A DNA stretch of 14,869 bases, taken from Selaginella moellendorffii. Lineage: Eukaryota > Plantae > Lycopodiophyta. Positions 4,429 to 14,720 of the stretch are shown one piece after another. The notes under the pieces were generated by a model. It did not search any database and was not told the origin of the DNA. It worked only from the letters and a program-made list of their open reading frames with translations. Position 1 is the first letter of the stretch. Each line of letters opens with the position of its first letter. The translations under genes and the position numbers were made by a program. The stretch is from positions 1-14,869 of the forward strand of contig NW_003314537.1 of assembly GCF_000143415.4 (NCBI RefSeq), written 5' to 3'.

Positions 4429-4646
4429 TTGGATAATTTATTGGCAAGAAATTGTGTGTGATCTAATCCGGGAAATATGACATTCGATAATGCTGCTCCA
4501 CACATTTTTGTGTTCTCATGTGTCGTCCTATCACTCGATCGAGAGACGTTGCGGTCGATTGATCCAGTTCTTGGGAAATCGATAGCAAATCGATCGATAT
4601 AGCTCAAGTTTCCGGGAAACGATTGCTCTGGTTGGATTGAATCGCG

Positions 4647-5411
4647 ATGGAGAAGCAGAGGGAGCAAGATTTCCTGGACCGGCTGGTGATCTTCCTGGCC
4701 AAGCGCGATGGCATCGACAAGCTGGTCAAGACGCTCCAGTACACCGGTAAGCTCTCGCACTGGCATCTCTCGCGGCGGAGCAAGCGATCAAGCGTCCCCA
4801 ATCTCGCCACTCGCGCCAAGGCGCTCGAGGTCTCGTGCGGCCTCGCGCGCAAGGCCTTCCGCCTCGGCCGCTGGCTCTCGGGCCTCAACAATCTCCGCGC
4901 GCCAGCGCCCAATCTCCCCTTCCTCGCGCTCGCCATCCTCGCCAACGCCGGGGAGATGGTCTACTTCTTCTTCGACCACTTCACCTGGCTCTCGCGGATT
5001 GGCGTGCTCGATCCCAGCCTCGCCCCGCGCTTCTCCCTCGTCTCGGCATCCGGGGAGGCGTTCGGCTACGTCTTCTTCGTGATCGCCGACGCCATTCTCA
5101 TCGCGCAGGGCGTCCGGGAGGAGCGGAGGCTCGCGCTGGAGCTGCAGGCGATGGTGAGGAGCCGGGACACGAAGCTGGGCGATGAATCGAGCAAGCTGGG
5201 CGGGCAGATCCAGGCCAAGAGGGTTGCGATCGCGGCAATCCGGGTGAAGAGAGTGATGTCGGCCATGGCGATCGCTGCTAACGTCGCGGATTTCGTGATC
5301 GCGCTCGCGGACATCGAGCCCAATCCGTTTGTGACCCATGCCGTGACGCTGGGGATCAGTGGATTGGTCTCAGCGTGGGCGGGATGGTATCGAAACTGGC
5401 CATCGTCTTAG
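4647..5411 (+). CDS. PEX11B: Peroxisomal membrane protein PEX11B-type, intronless, 254 aa
   Basis: LVIFLAKRDGIDKLVKTLQY, GLARKAFRLG, ANAGEMVYFFFDHFTWLSRIG and C-terminal TLGISGLVSAWAGWYRNWPS are characteristic of plant PEX11b. Confidence 0.95.
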   Translation: MEKQREQDFLDRLVIFLAKRDGIDKLVKTLQYTGKLSHWHLSRRSKRSSVPNLATRAKALEVSCGLARKAFRLGRWLSGLNNLRAPAPNLPFLALAILANAGEMVYFFFDHFTWLSRIGVLDPSLAPRFSLVSASGEAFGYVFFVIADAILIAQGVREERRLALELQAMVRSRDTKLGDESSKLGGQIQAKRVAIAAIRVKRVMSAMAIAANVADFVIALADIEPNPFVTHAVTLGISGLVSAWAGWYRNWPSS

Positions 5412-5465
5412 TTGCATTTTTGGAGATGCCAAAGGGATCTAAAGTTGATCCGATACACTATCTGT

Positions 5466-5487
5466 CCACGTGTCATACGCCCACGTT
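5466..5487 (+). promoter_or_regulatory. G-box/ABRE (CCACGTGTC) plus a second ACGT core (CACGTT) upstream of the polyamine transporter
   Basis: CACGTG at 5467-5472 and CACGTT at 5482-5487; motif match only. Confidence 0.4.
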
Positions 5488-5701
5488 TCCCACGCAGGAC
5501 AAACTGTGACCGTCCGATCATCAGTTTTAGGGTTCCTCCTCCTGTGGCATGGCGCAGCACTGCATGATGGCGATTGCTTGATCCCTGCGCTCCAAGAGCG
5601 CGGCGATGCAGCGCGGTGGGCTACACATCTTCCGCTGAGTGGGAATTCCTCTTCACTTGGATCTCTCTACCGGCATTTTAGATCCGAGGGTGGGCAGCAG
5701 C

Positions 5702-7141
5702 ATGGATTCGCCCAAGCGCGGCAGCAATCAGCACCAACAGCGCAAGCTCCCGCTCCTCCCGCTCGTCTTCCTGATCTTCTATGAGGTCTCCGGCGGCCCC
5801 TTCGGCGTGGAGGACGCGGTGGGCGCGGGTGGGGCGCTGCTCACGCTGCTGGGATTCATCGTCATGCCCTTTCTATGGAGCATCCCCGAGGCGGTGATCA
5901 CCGCGGAGCTCGCCACGGCCTTTCCCGACAACGGCGGCTACGTGCTGTGGATCCAGGCGGCCTTCGGCCCCTTCTGGGGATTCCAGGAGGGATGGTGGAA
6001 GTGGCTGTCGGGAGTGATCGACAACGCGCTCTATCCGGTGATGTTCCTCGACTACCTCAAGTGGGCGATCCCCAGCGTCGCCGGCGGCGTCGTGCGTTTG
6101 ATCTCGCTGCTGGTCATCACAGCCGCGCTCACCATCGTCAACTATCGCGGGCTCACGATCGTGGGCTACACCGCGGTGGCGCTGGGGATCTTCTCGCTGC
6201 TGCCGTTCGTGGTGCTCTTCTTCCTCGCGATCCCATCGCTGGAGCCGGCGCGCTGGCTGGAGGTGGATCTCCGCGACACCAACTGGACGCTCTACCTCAA
6301 CACGCTCTTCTGGAATCTAAACTACTGGGACTCGGTGAGTACGCTGGTGGGCGAGGTGGATCGGCCGCACGAGACGGTGCCGCGGGCGCTAGCGGCGGCG
6401 CTGGTCCTGGTGGTGGCGTCGTATCTCCTGCCGCTCCTGGCGGGCACCGGGGCGGCGCCGCCGGGCGACCGCAAGCTCTGGGCCGACGGCTACTTCGCGC
6501 ACATCGCGCTCAAGATCGGCGGCGGCTGGCTCAAGTGGTGGGTGGAGCTGGCGGCGCTGCTGTCCAACGCCGGGATGTTCGAGGCGGAGATGAGTAGCGA
6601 CTCTTTCCAGCTGCTCGGGATGGCGGAGAGGGGCATCTTGCCCGCGGCGTTTGCGCGGAGGTCGAGGTATGGGACGCCGGTGCTGGGGATCTTGTTCTCG
6701 GCCACCGGGGTCATCCTCCTCTCGTGGCTCAACTTCCAGGAGATCATCGAGATCCTAAACTTCCTCTACTGCTGCGGGATGCTGCTCGAGTTTGCGGCGT
6801 TCGTGTGGCTGCGGATCAAGCAGCCGAATCTCGTCCGGCCTTACAAAGTTCCGCTGGGGACGATCGGGGTGACGGTGATGTGCCTGGTGCCGTCGGTGCT
6901 GCTGGTGGTGGTGATGTGCATCGCGTCGGCCAAGACGGTGGTGCTCAGCGTGGTGTTCTCGCTGGTGGGATTTGCGGTGTACCCGGCGATCCAGCTCGCC
7001 AAAAAAAAAAGCTGGCTAAGTTTCATTGACGCGCCGGATCCCATCGCGCTCAACAAGGAGAAGATCCCGGCGCTGGCGGAGGAGCGCATTGTGCACGCGC
7101 GGGAAGCTGGGGATGAACAGACCCAGCTCTTGTGCTCATAG
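5702..7141 (+). CDS. Polyamine uptake transporter (PUT/LAT, RMV1-like; APC superfamily), about 479 aa. Possible alternative start at 5606 via a 66-nt intron 5616-5681 (MQRDPRVGSS-M)
   Basis: LPLVFLIFYEVSGGPFGVED, WSIPEAVITAELAT, GFQEGWWKWLSGVIDNALYPV, FWNLNYWDS and GMFEAEMSSDSFQLLGMAERG are PUT/LAT hallmark motifs; about 12 hydrophobic segments. Confidence 0.95.
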   Translation: MDSPKRGSNQHQQRKLPLLPLVFLIFYEVSGGPFGVEDAVGAGGALLTLLGFIVMPFLWSIPEAVITAELATAFPDNGGYVLWIQAAFGPFWGFQEGWWKWLSGVIDNALYPVMFLDYLKWAIPSVAGGVVRLISLLVITAALTIVNYRGLTIVGYTAVALGIFSLLPFVVLFFLAIPSLEPARWLEVDLRDTNWTLYLNTLFWNLNYWDSVSTLVGEVDRPHETVPRALAAALVLVVASYLLPLLAGTGAAPPGDRKLWADGYFAHIALKIGGGWLKWWVELAALLSNAGMFEAEMSSDSFQLLGMAERGILPAAFARRSRYGTPVLGILFSATGVILLSWLNFQEIIEILNFLYCCGMLLEFAAFVWLRIKQPNLVRPYKVPLGTIGVTVMCLVPSVLLVVVMCIASAKTVVLSVVFSLVGFAVYPAIQLAKKKSWLSFIDAPDPIALNKEKIPALAEERIVHAREAGDEQTQLLCS

Positions 7142-7299
7142 AAGTTTTTTAAATCCTACTTCGCAAAGAATCAACTAACCAAATGATGGTAAAGGATAAA
7201 TGCTCCACAAATATTTTCAACCCATTGGTCAAATGCGGCCAAGAATTAAAACTTAATACAAATGCAATGCTTTGTGGCTGGGAAGAGGCTTGATTTGAG

Positions 7300-8165
7300 A
7301 TGAAAAGCTTGTTGCTCCTGTTGCTATGGACGTTCTTGTGTGTGCCCATTAATGAAAAGGGTGGCCAGGGTGTACTCAACCTCGAGCAGGTCCTGGCCAT
7401 GGAGTTCCACATCCGCTACTTCCTCATCACTCAGCTCCAACCTGATAGATTCTATTATCCACGGACATGGTCCACAACACTCCGAATTGATCATGACCTT
7501 TTTGCATTGTAAGGCTGATGCTCTTTAGCCAAGTATCAGATGAAAGTTGCAGCCTTGCACCCTCCCCAATGCGGGTCCAAATCTTAGAGAAGCTTTCAAT
7601 GCCCTAGTTGATCGAGTCTCAGCACTAGCTAGTATGCATGGCTATAATCATGTAATGGCCACCTTAGGACTTGTAAGCATTGACTACCCGACTCTCTTCA
7701 CAGCTCTGCCACCAGGTCAGCTTGCAATGCACAGATATCCTTTTTGAGGCTGTTTCCAACACAACACCAACTCTCCAAAATGACTGTTATGCCTTTAACT
7801 CTACAATGGTGAGTTGAGAGTGAGGAGTGTTTGGATCCGACCTCTACAGTGGCTCTCATCTTGTATCTCTCGAGCTTGTTTTGAAATATGACTGTAACTT
7901 GGTAATATTAGCAAGGGGATGGAAGGAGCTTTGGTCGAGTTCCACACCTGGAAAAGGAGTTAAATGTGTACTCACTCAAATGGATGGGAACTTGGTGCTC
8001 ATAGGAGGAGATGGAGGTGGTATCTTTACATCAAACATTTACTACCAACCACGGATTTTTGGAATCAATTGGGTGCTTGAAAATAGTAGATCCATCATGA
8101 TTTACCATGCTTTGGGGCCATGCTTCTCTTGTGGCAACAGCTATAATTGTCTCACCTGGTCTTAA
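7300..8165 (+). pseudogene. Disrupted paralog of the 9121-10047 secreted lectin-domain gene
   Basis: Collinear with the intact copy (IRYFLITQLQPDRFY vs IRYFLINEIQPDRFY; GSDLYSGS; ARGWKELWSSST). It is broken into ORF pieces by a 1-nt deletion near 7500 (TAA 7510-7512), a deletion near 7570, a frameshift near 7740 and loss of the PNGFY segment. Confidence 0.88.
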
Positions 8166-8289
8166 ACTCCAGTAGGGAGTGTGGAGGACACCCAAGGTTT
8201 GCCCAATACTCCAAGAAATAAATTTATTAAGTTTCATGCCATGCAAACTTAAATACTAATATTAACCTTTTTCATGGTTACAATGAAGG

Positions 8290-8850
8290 AGAGCCACTCA
8301 ACAAGATCCACAGGAAAGATGAAACCAATGTCAATTAGCTTGCTTGACAGGGTGAAAATAGAAGTTGTCACAATGGTGTGGACAATAATGTTCGGAAAGA
8401 CTCCTTGAGTAGTCCCATGTGAAAATGTCTATGAGATCCTTAAGTGGTTTCCCATCCTTAGCTTCAACACCTTGCCCACAAACAAAAGGTTTGGCTAGCC
8501 ACTCTTAGTAACCAAATCAAGAGGGATGGTTTCCAACTCAGCCTAGAAAACATCCATTTTCAACTAGATCAAATTTACCATCACCTCTCAATCGAGTGGA
8601 TGGTCTGGCAACACATCCTCTAAGATAGAGTTCCACAACCCTTGCTTTGCTAAGCATATGTGATGCCATATGAAGAACAAGCTCAATGGTCCAAGATGTC
8701 AATTGAGATAGGAGTTGATACATGAAGTAGAATGTCAAGAGCTTGAACTTCCTAACGAACTGTTTGCAAAGTAGTAGAGAATCTGACCACATGTGGAGAT
8801 GCTTGACAACTCCCTTGTACTTACACTCATTTGGTGAAGTTGCCATAACT
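8290..8850 (-). pseudogene. Possible highly decayed PPR-protein fragment
   Basis: Fragments in different frames (EVQALDIL...ACSSYG; VCGQGVEAK...DIFTW; GVFPNII) loosely resemble PLS-PPR motifs; many stops. Weak. Confidence 0.25.
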
Positions 8851-9120
8851 ATTTGCGAGAATGATTAAATAAACTTGCCATCACCACACTAAGTCCACTG
8901 ACAAACAAAAAAAATGCTCCAAAATAATTTCTTATATTTTATTGAGTATATTGACCTCGAACACCCGGTTGTTGACATTCCCATTCATAGTCAACCCATT
9001 GTTCTTAATAGTCAAAGTTCGAAATGACCATTAGTCAATGCAGCCAAGAATCCCAATGATTAAGAGCCCCTGTTGGAAATGCAATATTTGAAAACTGAAG
9101 CTCAACTTGAGGCAAGAAAC

Positions 9121-10047
9121 ATGTTGGTGCTGCTCTTGTTTCTGTGGACAATCTTTTGTCCTTCTAGCTGCTTATGTGTGCGCTTCGATGTCGCAACTGG
9201 CTTGGGCATACTCAACCTCCACCAGGTCATTACCATGCAGGTCCGTATTCGCTACTTCCTCATCAATGAGATCCAACCGGACAGATTTTATGGTCCACAG
9301 ACATGGTCAACAACACTCCAAATCGATCACAACGTCTACTGTATTGTAGGTCTGACACTCTTCAGCCAAGCAGCAGATGGAAGTTGCAACCTTGCACCCT
9401 CCCCAATGATGACTCAGGGGTCCCATCTCAGAGCAGCTTTCAATTTCCTAGTTGATCAAGCTGGAGGACTAGCTCAAATGTATGGCTATAGCCACATAAT
9501 AGCCACCTCAGGACGTGTAAGCATTAACTACTTAACTATCTACACAACTCAGCCGCAAGGTCATCTTGCATCGCATAGTCAACCTTTTGAGGATGTTTAC
9601 AATCTTTCCCAACTCAATTCAACTCTCAACTCTACTAGAGATCTGTATGACCAAAATGACTGCTATCCCTTTCGCTCTGGAATGATGAGCGGAGAGCGAG
9701 GAGAGCTTGGATCCGACCTCTACAGTGGCTCTCGTCTTGTGTCTCCCAACGGCTTCTACGAGCTTGTTTTGGAATACAACTGTAACTTGGTGCTATTAGC
9801 GAGGGGATGGAAGGAGCTTTGGTCGAGTTCTACGGCTGGAAAAGGAGTTGGATGTGTACTCACTCTCCAAAGGGATGGGAACTTGGTGCTCGTAGGAGGA
9901 GATGGCAGAGGTATCTTTGCATCAAACATTTACTGCCAACCACAGCCTCACTGCATACTTGGAACCAATTTGGTGCTTGAAAATAGTGGATCTATCTCCA
10001 TCTATCGTGCCTCTGAGCCCATGCTTCTCTTGTGGCGACGGCCATAA
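9121..10047 (+). CDS. Secreted two-domain protein, 308 aa: signal peptide, unassigned ~110-aa domain (possibly KP4-like), N-glycosylated linker, C-terminal bulb-type (GNA/B-) lectin domain
   Basis: Intronless ORF with hydrophobic N-terminus MLVLLLFLWTIFC. DLYSGSRLVSPNGFYELVLEYNCNLVL, LWSSST and CVLTLQRDGNLVL are B-lectin motifs. Sequons NLS, NST, NST at residues 161-172. A paralog lies at 7300. Confidence 0.88.
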   Translation: MLVLLLFLWTIFCPSSCLCVRFDVATGLGILNLHQVITMQVRIRYFLINEIQPDRFYGPQTWSTTLQIDHNVYCIVGLTLFSQAADGSCNLAPSPMMTQGSHLRAAFNFLVDQAGGLAQMYGYSHIIATSGRVSINYLTIYTTQPQGHLASHSQPFEDVYNLSQLNSTLNSTRDLYDQNDCYPFRSGMMSGERGELGSDLYSGSRLVSPNGFYELVLEYNCNLVLLARGWKELWSSSTAGKGVGCVLTLQRDGNLVLVGGDGRGIFASNIYCQPQPHCILGTNLVLENSGSISIYRASEPMLLLWRRP

Positions 10048-10628
10048 GAGATCAATTTGGAATTCTGGTCTTAAACATAACATTCAAACTAGTTATACCA
10101 TCGAAAAAACTGCACGCACTGCTATAGGCTATAGGCTATCAGGAGAAGATGGACGTTTGGGAAAGAGTCATAGAATCACGATTTCCAGTTTTGCTGCTTT
10201 GCATGTTCTTCTTACCACGTTCTGGAGCTCTTGTTCACAGGTTTACAATTAGTACCGCACTGCTATGATATTCAAAGGCACTCGTGAAAAACAAGAAACG
10301 ACTTTGACCATCTCCCACTTTGTGCCGAAAGTCATTAGTTTTTCAATTTTTATTTTTTATTTTTTATGGCCATGGAAAGCCCTTTTCTAGTTGCATTAGG
10401 GAAATCTACAATGAACTTCACGATGTTGTGGAGAATGCCTGAGTATGCGTTTTGCTCCCTCGTTTTCCAACTTCCTGTGGAAGTAGATAACGACGTTCCG
10501 AGCTCGTGATCTATATTTCATAGAGAAGTACACAGAAAGCCGCAGTAAAATATCCCGGCATTGCAAGGTCGGGGAAAACTCGAGCAAAACTTGCTTCGCT
10601 TATTGACTGCCTCGTCGTGGTTGGATGA

Positions 10629-11724
10629 TCAGACTGTTGCTTGCTGGTTGCAGCATCCAGCGCGGTGCTCGATACGCGGCCAAAGATCTTTCACAGTTGG
10701 CCGTGGCTTTCCAGTACGCGAGTAGAAACCGTACAAGATCAGTTGAATCACCGCCAGGCAAGCCCCAACAAGATTTGGCACCTAGAGAGTGACCAGATTT
10801 TCAATGAATTGAGCTCCAAATAAGAAACGAGTCGAGCAATGCCTACCACAATGTAGTAGTCGTGTGGTTGTCCCAGGAATCCATACGCAGTCCAGGTAGC
10901 TCCATTGAAAAGCCCGGCCACGAGCGGCAGGAGGGGCATGTATTGGACGCTCTTGGTAGAAATCACTGTTCTCTGGACGAAACAAATCGAAGTAAAGTTG
11001 ATGGAACTCGATCAAAGTCCAGACTTACCATGATGGAAAGAGGAGAAGCATACATTGCAATGGTGACTACAGCGCAGCAAATCCCAGCAAACTTCTGGCG
11101 TGTGTGATGGTCCTTGGAAGCCATGAAAACAGCCAAAAAAATCCCCAAGTAAACCGTCAAGACGATGCTGATCATCCCGGCTACTCTGGCCTGTAAATAA
11201 TAACAAGCAAAGTAACTACGATAGAAAACTTTCACATGAACTCTTCCCTACCTTCTCGATTCTCTTGGAGGCGTAGAAGAGGAAGATCCCCAGATAGACG
11301 CTCTCGATCACACAGCCGATTGTATTGATCGTGATCACGAGGACGCTGTTGGAAGTAACGAAGGGAAGGCCGTAGAGCACCCAGAGCAAGCAGTTGAAGA
11401 GCGTCGCGACGTAAGGGGCTCCCGAGAAGTCGCCCGTGGTGTGGTTCTTGACGATACTCCGGAAGGTTGGCCTGTCAAGCACACGTCAGAGCCCGTCAAA
11501 GCCTCGTCAATGCCAGCCATAGCCAAAACCCCAGGGGCCAGGGATCAAGAAAGCGAGGATCTTACGCAGGGGACAGGAAGAGGCCGAAAGCGATCACATT
11601 TCCTGCGGGGAGCGCTCTCCACAATCAGGATCGGCGAGATCGAGAGAGAAAGAGGAAATCGGGAGAAAGAAGAAAGATTACCGATGATCCCCATGACAGT
11701 GCGAATTGCGCCGGCGGGCGCCAT
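10629..11724 (-). CDS. SWEET: SWEET sugar transporter (MtN3/saliva), clade II-like, about 246 aa; exons 11724-11682, 11602-11566, 11471-11252, 11190-11029, 10972-10847, 10781-10629
   Basis: Spliced product [30 protein letters not shown]...FSGAPYVATLFNCLLWVLYGLP...LVITIN...MYASPLSIMRTVISTKSVQYMP...YIVVPNLVG...QLILY. Canonical 6-exon SWEET layout with GT-AG introns of 79, 94, 61, 56 and 65 nt. Confidence 0.95.
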
Positions 11725-11959
11725 ATTTTCTCCTCCGGACACGCGATCGATCGAGCGAGCGCCTACATTTGCCGCCGCGAGCTCCCCCGCCGAGAAAGAA
11801 ACGTTCTTTTGTTCTTCGTGGTAGGGGTTTAACGCGCCAGATCGCCACCGTTAGATCTTTGGCCGTTGGATGTGGAGCGCGGGCAAAGTTTTAGGGCTAG
11901 CGATGGCGATGGCGACACGATCTTCTTCTTTCTCGATCTAACCCTCTTTCGAGCGCCAG

Positions 11960-12770
11960 GATTCATCGAATCCGGATTTCCGGGCGATGGCCTGTCAATG
12001 GAGAGCTTCCGGACTCCACATTGTGATACAGTGGCGAGCTGTGGCTTCTTTCGAGGTAATAATCTCGCGCTCTTTGGACTTGGAAGATAGAATTTGTAGG
12101 AAGTCCAGCTCCACGGCGACGAAGTGACCACTTTCTGGTGTGCCTTCTCGAAATTTTTGCTCTCTTTCCTTTCTAAGGTTTTTGTTTAAGTGGATCTTAG
12201 TTTCTCAAGACCAGGATGAAGCTGAATTTGCGAAGCTTATATATGGCTGATGGCAATGCTACGGCCGAGCTCCTCCAAGTTTCCACATTGCTTCAGCAAG
12301 CCATCGCATCAGCTTCTTCTGAAAAGGTCGGTGAGTAGTTTTTCTCTTTTCTTTTTCTTTGTTTGTTTGTTGTGATGCGGGCATTGGGTTATGCAGTTGC
12401 CAGAGACAACACTCTTCAAACGGGTGAAAGCTGCTCGATCACTGGTTCTGGATCAAGGCTGGAGCAACGGTATACGACGATTTGGCCACAGAATGCACCT
12501 TCAGGTAGATATAAACCTGTGCTTTTGCTTTTGTAACTTTTAGTATTGATGCTGCGACAGGAGAACGACTTCGACAAACACTGACACTGAGCAGATTGAG
12601 AATTTGGTTAGAGAGGGTACATTTAGTTTGCTGCAAACAGTTTCTTCGATTGAGCAGCAACAGCATAGCTGCGAAAAGGATGAAAAATGTTTTGAGTATA
12701 TAACACACGAGAAATGAAAAGTGGAGCTGGACCGATGTAAGAAGCGCCTCTCAGTGCTTTAAACAGTTTT
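11960..12770 (+). pseudogene. CLUAP1: Disrupted, 3'-truncated CLUAP1/IFT38 (intraflagellar transport B) homologue
   Basis: Collinear blocks match IFT38: SMESFRTP (about 11995; cf. SMENFRTP), KTRMKLNLRSLYMADGNATAELL (12207-12275; cf. KLNTKKLYQADGYAVKELL), VKAARSL...KAGATVYDDL (12424-12484; cf. LKAARQL...KGASLYDLL) and KVELDRCKKRLSVL (12718-12759; cf. KLELERNRKRLETL). Frameshift near 12451; in-frame TGA 12715-12717 and TAA 12760-12762. Confidence 0.8.
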
Positions 12771-12914
12771 CAATCACATTGAAACCGTGGAGAACTCTTT
12801 AGGCCATCATCCTTTGATGAGTAAAAAGTGCTCCAAAGTGAGCTGTGCAGCCTTTTGGTGTTTGAAACGACTCTTAAGGGCACACTCAACCTTGAGCAAA
12901 TCTAGTGAGTCCAA

Positions 12915-14720
12915 TTAATTAGAAGTAATAATGATATATTCATTGCTAATAGTCAAGTTTGGAAAATGTTTTATTAGATCAAATGTTATTAATTTAAATG
13001 GACAGGAAATTGCAATTGACTCTAACCATTATTTCATAACATGAAAGGGAGTAATATGAATTTAGCACCAAATATATTTATACATATATTGGATAACTTT
13101 ATATTACATTTTCAGCTAATAAAAAAACTTGTGCAACTTTTCAATCATACTATGATGTCCCATATGTCTGCGTAAAATAAATGAATCATGGTAAGTATAG
13201 AGAAAGCATGGAACAAAAATTGAAAAGCACCACCAGCCATAAATGATCATTAAGATTCATCTCTACAAAATAAAGAAAATCATTCTCAAGATGATATTAA
13301 GAATGTAAATACTAAATGGCAAATTATTAACAAATGATACAAGATTTTCAAATCTATCACGCTATAGCAACCACTGACCCTATAGAAACCTTGTCCAAAA
13401 AATCTATAAATGTTGAAACAAACTTGTCAAAAACATAAAAAGAAAGTGAAAGAGGAAGAGGAACTTAAGAAAGAACATTAACATTAATTATAAAACTCTT
13501 TAAATGATTAACAGAATCAAAATTATATATTTGATTTAAAACCAACTAAACAGTACAACCAACTAAATTATTCCACTTTAATAATAAAATAAATGCAATA
13601 TGATCACCTTTTAGTAATGTCCAAGAATTATATAGATATGCATAAAGTTTCTAAATACTCTAAATTGTTGCTAAACACTCATTCTCTATCATGGAATAAT
13701 TCACCTTTATTGATTGTAATGTACAGTTGATATATGTAATGGGATGGCATTGATTAAGCATTGGGCTCTTTTATATTAACACACCTCTAAAACTGATATC
13801 AAAAGTATTCACATGCAAAATAAAAATCAAGTGTAGTTAGGATATGCTAAAATTAGAAGAATTGTTAACAACTCTTTGAGATCTATAAATGCCCACTCAC
13901 AATCTATAGATCAAAGGAAAGACAATGTTAATAATTTCAATAATGCTCGCAATGGTGCAATATAATTAGAAAGATAGTTAATGAAACGACTGAGATATTG
14001 CAAATTGCCTAAGTAGCACTACACATCATTCACATATTTTGGAGTAGGGAAATTGAGAATATCCATAAATTTTTCAGAATCACATGAGAAATACAGTACT
14101 AAGATAAATGGTGTTTTTAGACTCAAACATGCACTTTGATCTCTTCAACTTTAAACTAATTTCTCGTAGCTGATCCAATATTTTACAAATATCACAAATG
14201 TATTCCTCCTATGTCCTCTCCAAGTGGATTAAGACATCATTAATGAAATTAATAGTCATCTCTAACATATTGCAAAGAACCTTGTTTATCATTTGTTAGA
14301 AAGTTGCTGAAGCATTGTTTAAACCAAATGGCATCACCAAGAACTTATATAAACTAAATAGTGTACGAAAAACAATCTGGGGAAAATCTTTTTTAGCTAT
14401 TAGCTCTTGTTGACACATTAAAGCAAAATTTAACATAGTGAATCAATAATGTTTTTATAGACAATCTAGAAGATTAACAATGTGAGGAAGGGTACACATT
14501 CGAGATTATCACTTCATTTAACAAATAATAATTGATATAAAAACAAATACTCTTATTACACTTCGTCGTAAGATAAAGTTCACATGCTTAAAAACTCTGT
14601 AACTTTTGAATAACACTTTTTTTTAACATTTCTTTGATATTTATATATAAAACCTTGATCTCTTTTGATGACCGACAATGAACAAAAACCTTCATTAGAT
14701 AAACATTTCTAGTTAGAATA
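12915..14720 (-). mobile_element. Degenerate Ty3/gypsy LTR-retrotransposon pol relic (RT, RNase H, start of integrase); probably continues beyond the window end
   Basis: Minus-strand translation gives IKEMLKKSVIQ, INYYLLNEV...VYP, IVFRTLFSLYKFLVMPFGLNNASATF*Q (VMPFGLNNA at 14337-14311), FIND in place of YxDD (14247-14236), LKLKRSKCMF, AFIDLKELLT...LAYPNY, NYSMIENECLA, then integrase zinc-finger relic YHDS...HMGH (about 13190-13155) and PFKLITFDLI. The RT-RH-INT order indicates gypsy. Numerous stops. Confidence 0.9.

Follow-up and report, generated by a model that had tools for sequence, protein, structure and literature searches.

A putative secreted lectin-fusion protein with an orphan N-terminal domain from a little-annotated Selaginella gene family

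The DNA analysed here (termed the window) is the entire 14,869-bp scaffold GL377841.1 of Selaginella moellendorffii, assembly GCA_000143415.2. Its forward strand carries an uninterrupted, single-exon open reading frame of 308 codons, the product of which runs from a hydrophobic N-terminus through a domain of no assignable family and a linker with several glycosylation sequons to a C-terminal bulb-type lectin domain of the GNA family (Table 1). Upstream of this gene lie a degenerate tandem copy of it and, farther upstream, genes for PEX11 and for an amino-acid permease; downstream, on the minus strand, lies a SWEET/MtN3 gene (10629-11724). An initial annotation of the window had proposed this reading frame and this order of domains, and had described an intronless gene with a signal peptide, a glycosylated linker and a bulb-type lectin at the C-terminus, lacking both a kinase and a transmembrane segment; on all of these points it agrees with what is found. 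Likewise, every motif string that it quoted from the window is present, with L28-G29-I30 encoded from position 9202 and GRVSINYL ending at 9534.

Table 1. Coordinates, within the window, of the lectin-fusion gene, its parts and its tandem copy
Feature	Position	Strand	Remarks
Complete coding sequence, putative secreted lectin-fusion protein	9121..10047	+	308 codons + stop; colinear with paralogue ORF L001:10001-10927
Alternative in-frame ATG	9079..9081	+	+14 residues, MQYLKTEAQLEARN; sequence read-out
Putative signal peptide, residues ~1-19/20	9121..9180	+	Hydrophobic N-terminus, MLVLLLFLWTIFCPSSCLC; judged by eye
Orphan N-terminal domain, residues 21-150	9181..9570	+	Two conserved cysteines, C74 and C89
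Linker	9571..9699	+	Three N-glycosylation sequons and Cys181; sequence read-out
Sequon N161-L-S	9601-9609	+	Linker
Sequon N166-S-T	9616-9624	+	Linker
Sequon N170-S-T	9628-9636	+	Linker
GNA / bulb-type (B_lectin) domain, residues 194-308	9700..10044	+	phmmer against PDB sequences
Mannose motif, site II, Q250-R-D-G-N-L-V-L-V258	9868..9894	+	Near-canonical, final Tyr replaced by Val
Degenerate tandem copy (pseudogene) of the lectin-fusion gene	7300..8162	+	76% nucleotide identity, 7362-8146 versus 9198-10047

The upstream in-frame ATG at 9079 has no counterpart in the paralogues described below, in which the ATG aligns near position 9121. The signal peptide and its cleavage site were placed by eye, no predictor being used; the N-termini of the paralogues (MRLKALYLVLLQIFC and MKSLLLLLLWTFLC) are arranged in the same manner. 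Within the linker, the string NSTLNST, which contains two of the three sequons, is invariant between the window protein and its intact paralogue. A Pfam search with the window protein returns B_lectin as the sole match; the protein has no transmembrane segment, no kinase, S_locus_glycop or PAN domain, and no EGF, glycosyl hydrolase (GH) or peptidase domain.

Assignment of the C-terminal part to the GNA family is based upon a phmmer search of PDB sequences, in which residues ~195-300 match more than 30 PDB chains of that family at E-values between 3e-12 and 1e-6, the best-listed matches being 1dlp (3e-12) and the Gastrodia antifungal protein 1xd5 (1e-11); the reading frame stops eight residues past the lectin domain. 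By the measure of the Pfam B_lectin family (PF01453), by contrast, the window protein (17.7 bits), its paralogue (18.8 bits) and the corresponding piece of the tandem copy (14.0 bits) all score beneath the gathering cut-off of 32.4 bits. Alignment with the Gastrodia antifungal protein locates the three sugar sites, one per subdomain, for which the canonical motif is QxDxNxVxY, and just one of the three (site II) is near-canonical: site I is degenerate, reading EYNCNLVLL (that is, ExNxNxVxL), and site III has lost both the Q and the D of the motif through a three-residue deletion. The lectin cysteine pair is retained, with C221 (in CNLVL) and C245 (in GCVL) aligning with cysteines of the Gastrodia protein. 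An AlphaFold model of the whole protein, built from an alignment of two sequences, has a pLDDT of only ~25 over the lectin region, for which the family would lead one to expect a beta-prism II fold. With a score below the Pfam cut-off and degeneracy at two of the three sites, binding of sugar by this domain is not assured.

The existing annotation captures very little of this gene. GenBank annotates within it just positions 9709-9927, with a 73-aa product, and an exact look-up of the full protein returns no record. A word search with the whole protein finds a single database relative, SELMODRAFT_413139 (P0001), a 359-aa product of a gene model with introns, and a word search with the lectin part matches nothing other than the window's own 73-aa fragment. 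The paralogous locus (termed L001) is the end of scaffold GL377584.1, where positions 10001-10927 hold an uninterrupted, intronless 308-aa open reading frame that is colinear with that of the window from the start region to a shared ...LLLWRRP stop. The tail of the GenBank model, by comparison, matches another frame of the window (ORF 9902-10252), and within L001:10001-11396 it corresponds to another frame plus downstream DNA. Because the tail of the model matches another frame while the locus itself holds an open 308-aa frame, the intron-containing model is a mis-annotation and the family is a single-exon one. In the literature searched no mention of the SELMODRAFT_413139 locus tag was found.

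The window holds a second, decayed member of the same family, located 1.8 kb upstream of the intact gene. This tandem copy has its own ATG and a signal-like peptide at 7300, followed by frame shifts near 7500, 7575 and 7740 and by stop codons in frame at 7815-7823, and its lectin-coding part has suffered several deletions; judged from these lesions, it is a pseudogene. The loci on the two scaffolds are flanked in addition by related fragments of a Cluap1-like (IFT-type) gene, at 11841-12863 in the window and at 8315-9527 in L001, which share 74% identity, are inverted relative to each other and adjoin a lectin-fusion locus in each case; short pieces of the window at 11356-11646 also match L001 9560-9841. 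Since such a Cluap1-like fragment lies beside both loci, these appear to be related through a rearranged segmental duplication. Hence the arrangement of copies indicates a family that turns over by way of both tandem and segmental duplication.

The N-terminal domain (N-domain) is of a different character. The initial annotation had remarked that it could be assigned to no known family, and this is what was found throughout searches of Pfam, of PDB sequences, of representative proteins, by words and of metagenomes. Specifically, (i) at E<=10 the N-domain draws no match from Pfam, be it Kp4, Hce2, Stress-antifung or any other family, in the window protein, in the paralogue or in the pieces of the pseudogene, with the proviso that the HMMER filters discard most matches above about 0.1; (ii) no PDB sequence, the KP4 structures included, matches the N-domain at E<=10, whether single sequences or a profile are used; (iii) an exhaustive HMMER search with the N-domain profile finds 0 matches among 1.84 billion representative proteins; (iv) a word search with the N-domain alignment finds nothing at E<=10; and (v) two metagenome scans with the N-domain find nothing. 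The third of these results is to be read with care for this family, since the search missed even the known, 65%-identical paralogue SELMODRAFT_413139, whose cluster apparently has as its representative a sequence absent from the set; this makes the blank weaker than it looks. The notion that the N-domain is a degenerate second lectin repeat was rejected, hhalign giving it a probability of 0.3%.

Structure prediction adds little to this. An AlphaFold2 model of the whole protein, based upon a two-sequence alignment that included SELMODRAFT_413139 with its mis-annotated C-terminal tail, reaches a pLDDT of 30, and a model of the N-domain, for which the alignment consisted of the window protein, the paralogue and three separate in-frame pieces of the pseudogene, reaches a pLDDT of 43. 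Both models are too poor for a comparison of folds, whether for or against KP4. When the latter, despite being too poor to bear on the fold, was used as a query, Foldseek returned nothing at E<=0.001 from the PDB (TM<=0.33) or from BFVD (TM<=0.38), matches in the ESM Atlas reached TM<=0.40, and KP4 was among the matches in none of the three. The predicted secondary structure, (beta)-alpha-beta-beta-alpha-beta-beta, is the same in the two AlphaFold runs, at low confidence. It seems best to regard the N-domain as an orphan with an alpha/beta make-up and not as a demonstrated KP4 homologue.

Expression was examined using three stranded Selaginella moellendorffii RNA-seq runs, from each of which ~9.2 million reads were sampled and mapped to positions 4500-10400 of the window. 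Sense depth over 9031-10015 is 0 in all three runs; in the same runs the permease gene has a sense depth of 15-47 and PEX11 one of 1-13. (A contig of 817 nt identical to positions 9292-10108 occurs in one sequencing run; it is not informative regarding RNA.) A few antisense reads fall at 9819-10400, with the first mate on the plus strand and a depth of up to 0.5, and have loose ends at 9859 and 10242 that run into unlike sequence; they may come from the 3' end of the minus-strand SWEET/MtN3 gene or from a paralogous locus. Among the reads over PEX11 and the permease (4600-7200), ~30 positions show a second base, many of them in near half of the reads, and about a fifth of the reads in two of the three runs have a one-base insertion after position 7000; these variants fit expression of both haplotypes in a heterozygous genome.

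The composition of the window changes sharply along its length: GC is 0.64 over 4647-7141, which contains PEX11 and the permease, and 0.36-0.49 in the 3-kb block within 7200-10400 that contains the two lectin-fusion copies; near the scaffold end, 13001-14000 is very AT-rich, with a GC of 0.27. Correspondingly, third-position GC (GC3) is 0.48 in the lectin-fusion gene versus 0.86-0.90 in the PEX11 and permease genes, which is unusual beside these neighbours but is not evidence of a foreign origin; weak or conditional expression would account for it no worse than other causes would. The horizontal origin that the initial annotation had suggested on the strength of the missing introns finds no support and was rejected: the family has no relatives outside Selaginella, and hence no donor-like one, and the intronless state is common to native neighbours, PEX11 and the permease also being single-exon genes.

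On balance, the gene is likely to encode a secreted chimerolectin belonging to a family that is confined to Selaginella and that is almost wholly missing from the annotation. On this interpretation the protein would enter the secretory pathway, become N-glycosylated and act outside the cell. There the conserved lectin module would anchor it to mannose-type glycans, which might be those of a microbe, of a herbivore's gut or of the plant's own wall, while the variable N-domain would provide a specific activity or recognition function. Because none of the three RNA-seq runs shows sense reads from the gene, its expression would probably be conditional, that is, either induced or limited to a certain tissue or stage. 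It is unlikely, though the least so of the other readings weighed here, that the N-domain serves as a toxic or effector module, with either a new fold or a low-cysteine derivative of the KP4/ECP2 fold, and that the family constitutes a Selaginella-specific, fast-diversifying, lectin-targeted defence family of the A-B type that annotation has missed.

Against a functional secreted chimerolectin stands the fact that there is no RNA for the window copy, which could instead be a silent gene heading toward decay, as its tandem neighbour has done. In its full form this alternative takes the gene to belong to a dispersed, repeat-like family and to be silent and in decay, its open reading frame having been kept by chance or through recent gene conversion, without present function. 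The two intact copies allow it to be weighed, using dN and dS calculated by the Nei-Gojobori method from the window ORF and the 308-aa ORF of L001. For the whole gene dN is 0.198 and dS 0.507 (omega 0.39), for the N-domain 0.35 and 0.67 (omega 0.52), and for the lectin domain 0.039 and 0.27 (omega 0.15); that is, non-synonymous change has proceeded about nine times faster in the N-domain than in the lectin domain. Calculated from the Nei-Gojobori counts, dS exceeds dN by ~4.6 standard errors for the whole gene and by ~2.3 for the N-domain. These values indicate that both domains are under purifying selection, the omega of 0.52 for the N-domain being only moderately below 1.

Against decay, two copies separated by a dS of ~0.5 have each retained a frame of 308 codons that opens in the same region and ends at the same stop, dN is well under dS both in the whole gene and in the N-domain alone, and glycosylation sequons and cysteine positions are conserved. 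Consistent with decay, on the other hand, are the lack of sense RNA in the three runs (although three RNA-seq samples cannot show that a gene is silent), the tandem copy that has already become a pseudogene, and the GC3 that lies so far below that of the expressed neighbours. Moreover, nucleotide identity between the intact copies is 91.5% over the lectin half and 67% over the N half; combined with a dS that is lower in the lectin half, this is compatible with gene conversion having acted on the 3' half, in which case conservation of the lectin could reflect conversion instead of selection. Considering both sides, decay is an improbable account of this gene.

The initial annotation had gone further than a defence-related lectin fusion in proposing that the N-domain is homologous to KP4, a killer toxin encoded by a virus of Ustilago, on the grounds of short motifs occurring in the same order over a similar length. 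UmV-KP4 has five disulphides. The reading that would follow places the N-domain, as a far-diverged member with few cysteines, in the alpha/beta-sandwich superfamily of KP4 (or, more widely, KP4/ECP2) and makes the whole protein a defence toxin of the A-B type, in which the lectin delivers a growth-inhibiting module to the glycans of fungi or insects. The homology is not borne out by the comparison of the N-domain with Pfam and the PDB that had been proposed as a check: none of three family members matches Kp4, Hce2 or Stress-antifung at E<=10, and no PDB sequence matches at that threshold. That the domain is poor in cysteine and lacks the GCxxCGS motif, as had been conceded, is correct, C74 and C89 being its only conserved cysteines; membership in the KP4 fold, which had been proposed all the same, gains nothing from the HMM searches.

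The order of the motifs fares somewhat better. When the six quoted KP4 pieces are matched in order, the window N-domain scores 79, versus 40.7 +/- 8.3 in shuffled sequences (0/1000 reaching the observed score), and the paralogue, which had not been seen when the motifs were chosen, scores 63, versus 37.9 +/- 8.1 (3/1000), the best of 31 unrelated real pieces scoring 57. These scores are, however, biased in favour of a match, inasmuch as the pieces were picked to fit the window sequence, with which the paralogue shares 53% identity. Thus the motifs do match better than shuffles, albeit in a biased test, but several of the matched residues (LGI, PQT) vary among the paralogues and so are not conserved within the lectin-fusion family.

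Two other considerations bear upon a KP4 relationship. The nearest clusters found by a protein language model in the Atlas consist of small secreted proteins of Ascomycota, and Hce2 occurs in 14% of the members of one of them (score 0.87); this Hce2/ECP2 lead, falling under the 0.9 line, was dropped, the paralogue having failed to reproduce it and Pfam having given no Hce2 match. The KP4 fold, in turn, is a five-stranded antiparallel sheet packed against two helices, its split beta-alpha-beta crossover being left-handed, and the core of UmV-KP4 and of Zt-KP4-1 is beta-alpha-beta-beta-alpha-beta-beta (PMC12382754), an order that the predicted helices and strands of the N-domain fit, as they do many other folds. 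The fold also includes the ECP2/Hce2 group, is present in plants, and may be adopted by proteins that have just two disulphides (such as Zt-KP4-1) and no Kp4 Pfam signature (PMC12382754). Weighing this tolerance of the fold and the ordered motifs against the lack of any family or PDB match, the bias of the motif test, the variable LGI and PQT, the presence of only two conserved cysteines and the unreproduced Atlas lead, kinship of the N-domain with KP4 is unsupported and improbable.

Recognition proteins of plants include some with B_lectin domains, the S-locus glycoproteins among them. By analogy with these, the lectin might attach to glycans of the plant itself, with the fast-evolving N-domain forming a recognition surface for self/non-self or for gamete or cell-surface recognition, a reading to which a rapidly diverging domain beside a conserved lectin, the birth-and-death dynamics of the family and an expression too narrow in stage or organ to appear in the sampled RNA would all be suited, but which, being purely analogical and having neither an S_locus_glycop or PAN domain nor a kinase partner to point to, is the least probable of those considered.

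Interpreted as a secreted chimerolectin, the protein bears upon how plant lectins are counted. Surveys of plant lectins rely on annotated proteins and on Pfam/InterPro signatures, and this family escapes both; inasmuch as its members are represented by a 73-aa fragment and by a model with false introns, and as their lectin scores fall under the Pfam cut-off, the lectin repertoire of lycophytes is under-counted. Moreover, a conserved glycan-binding module joined to a fast-evolving domain is the layout expected of a targeted defence or recognition protein. Were the N-domain to prove toxic, or to have a new fold, the family would represent a new type of plant chimerolectin; as matters stand, the family is lineage-specific, uncharacterised and moderately interesting, and of a kind already known in the form of the GNA chimerolectins.

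Among known systems, the KP4 toxin of Ustilago maydis virus P4 is similar to the N-domain in size (~105-130 aa), in being secreted and in a compatible order of predicted helices and strands, and short motifs of the N-domain resemble those of KP4 in the same order; it differs in having ten cysteines instead of two, no match at the level of HMM, sequence or fold was obtained, and KP4 proteins stand alone whereas the window protein is a lectin fusion. The lectin-like bacteriocins (pyocin L1 and putidacin L1; 4le7 and 3m7h) are among the matches to the lectin domain (E ~4e-7) and share its fold, which in their case directs killing to a glycan on a surface; as bacterial proteins, however, they consist of lectin domains in tandem and have no further domain of another type, and beyond the lectin fold no common descent is evident.

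Closer to the window protein are the plant GNA chimerolectins, which include the G-type lectin receptor kinases and the S-locus glycoproteins: a published survey covers fusions of GNA domains to glycosyl hydrolases or peptidases and discusses the G-type lectin receptor kinases (PMC6362431). Like these (PMC6362431), the window protein combines a GNA domain with a second module and is predicted to follow the secretory pathway; it departs from them in that its partner domain matches no family and in that the lectin lies C-terminal to the partner, and in the literature searched, surveys of plant lectins included, this combination of the N-domain with a C-terminal GNA lectin was not found. The GNA-related (monocot mannose-binding) lectins themselves, such as GAFP-1/gastrodianin (1xd5, 1xd6) and the two-domain Scilla lectin SCAfet (1dlp), consist of one or two lectin domains, whereas the window protein adds, upstream of its lectin, an unrelated domain of 130 aa and a glycosylated linker, and its lectin has two of three sugar sites degenerate and a score under the B_lectin cut-off. 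Nevertheless, its C-terminal ~115 residues align with these lectins at E-values of 1e-11 to 3e-12, the cysteines of CNLVL and GC and the QxDxNxV of subdomain II are kept, and, by analogy, the window protein may well have in common with them both secretion and a plausible role in defence.
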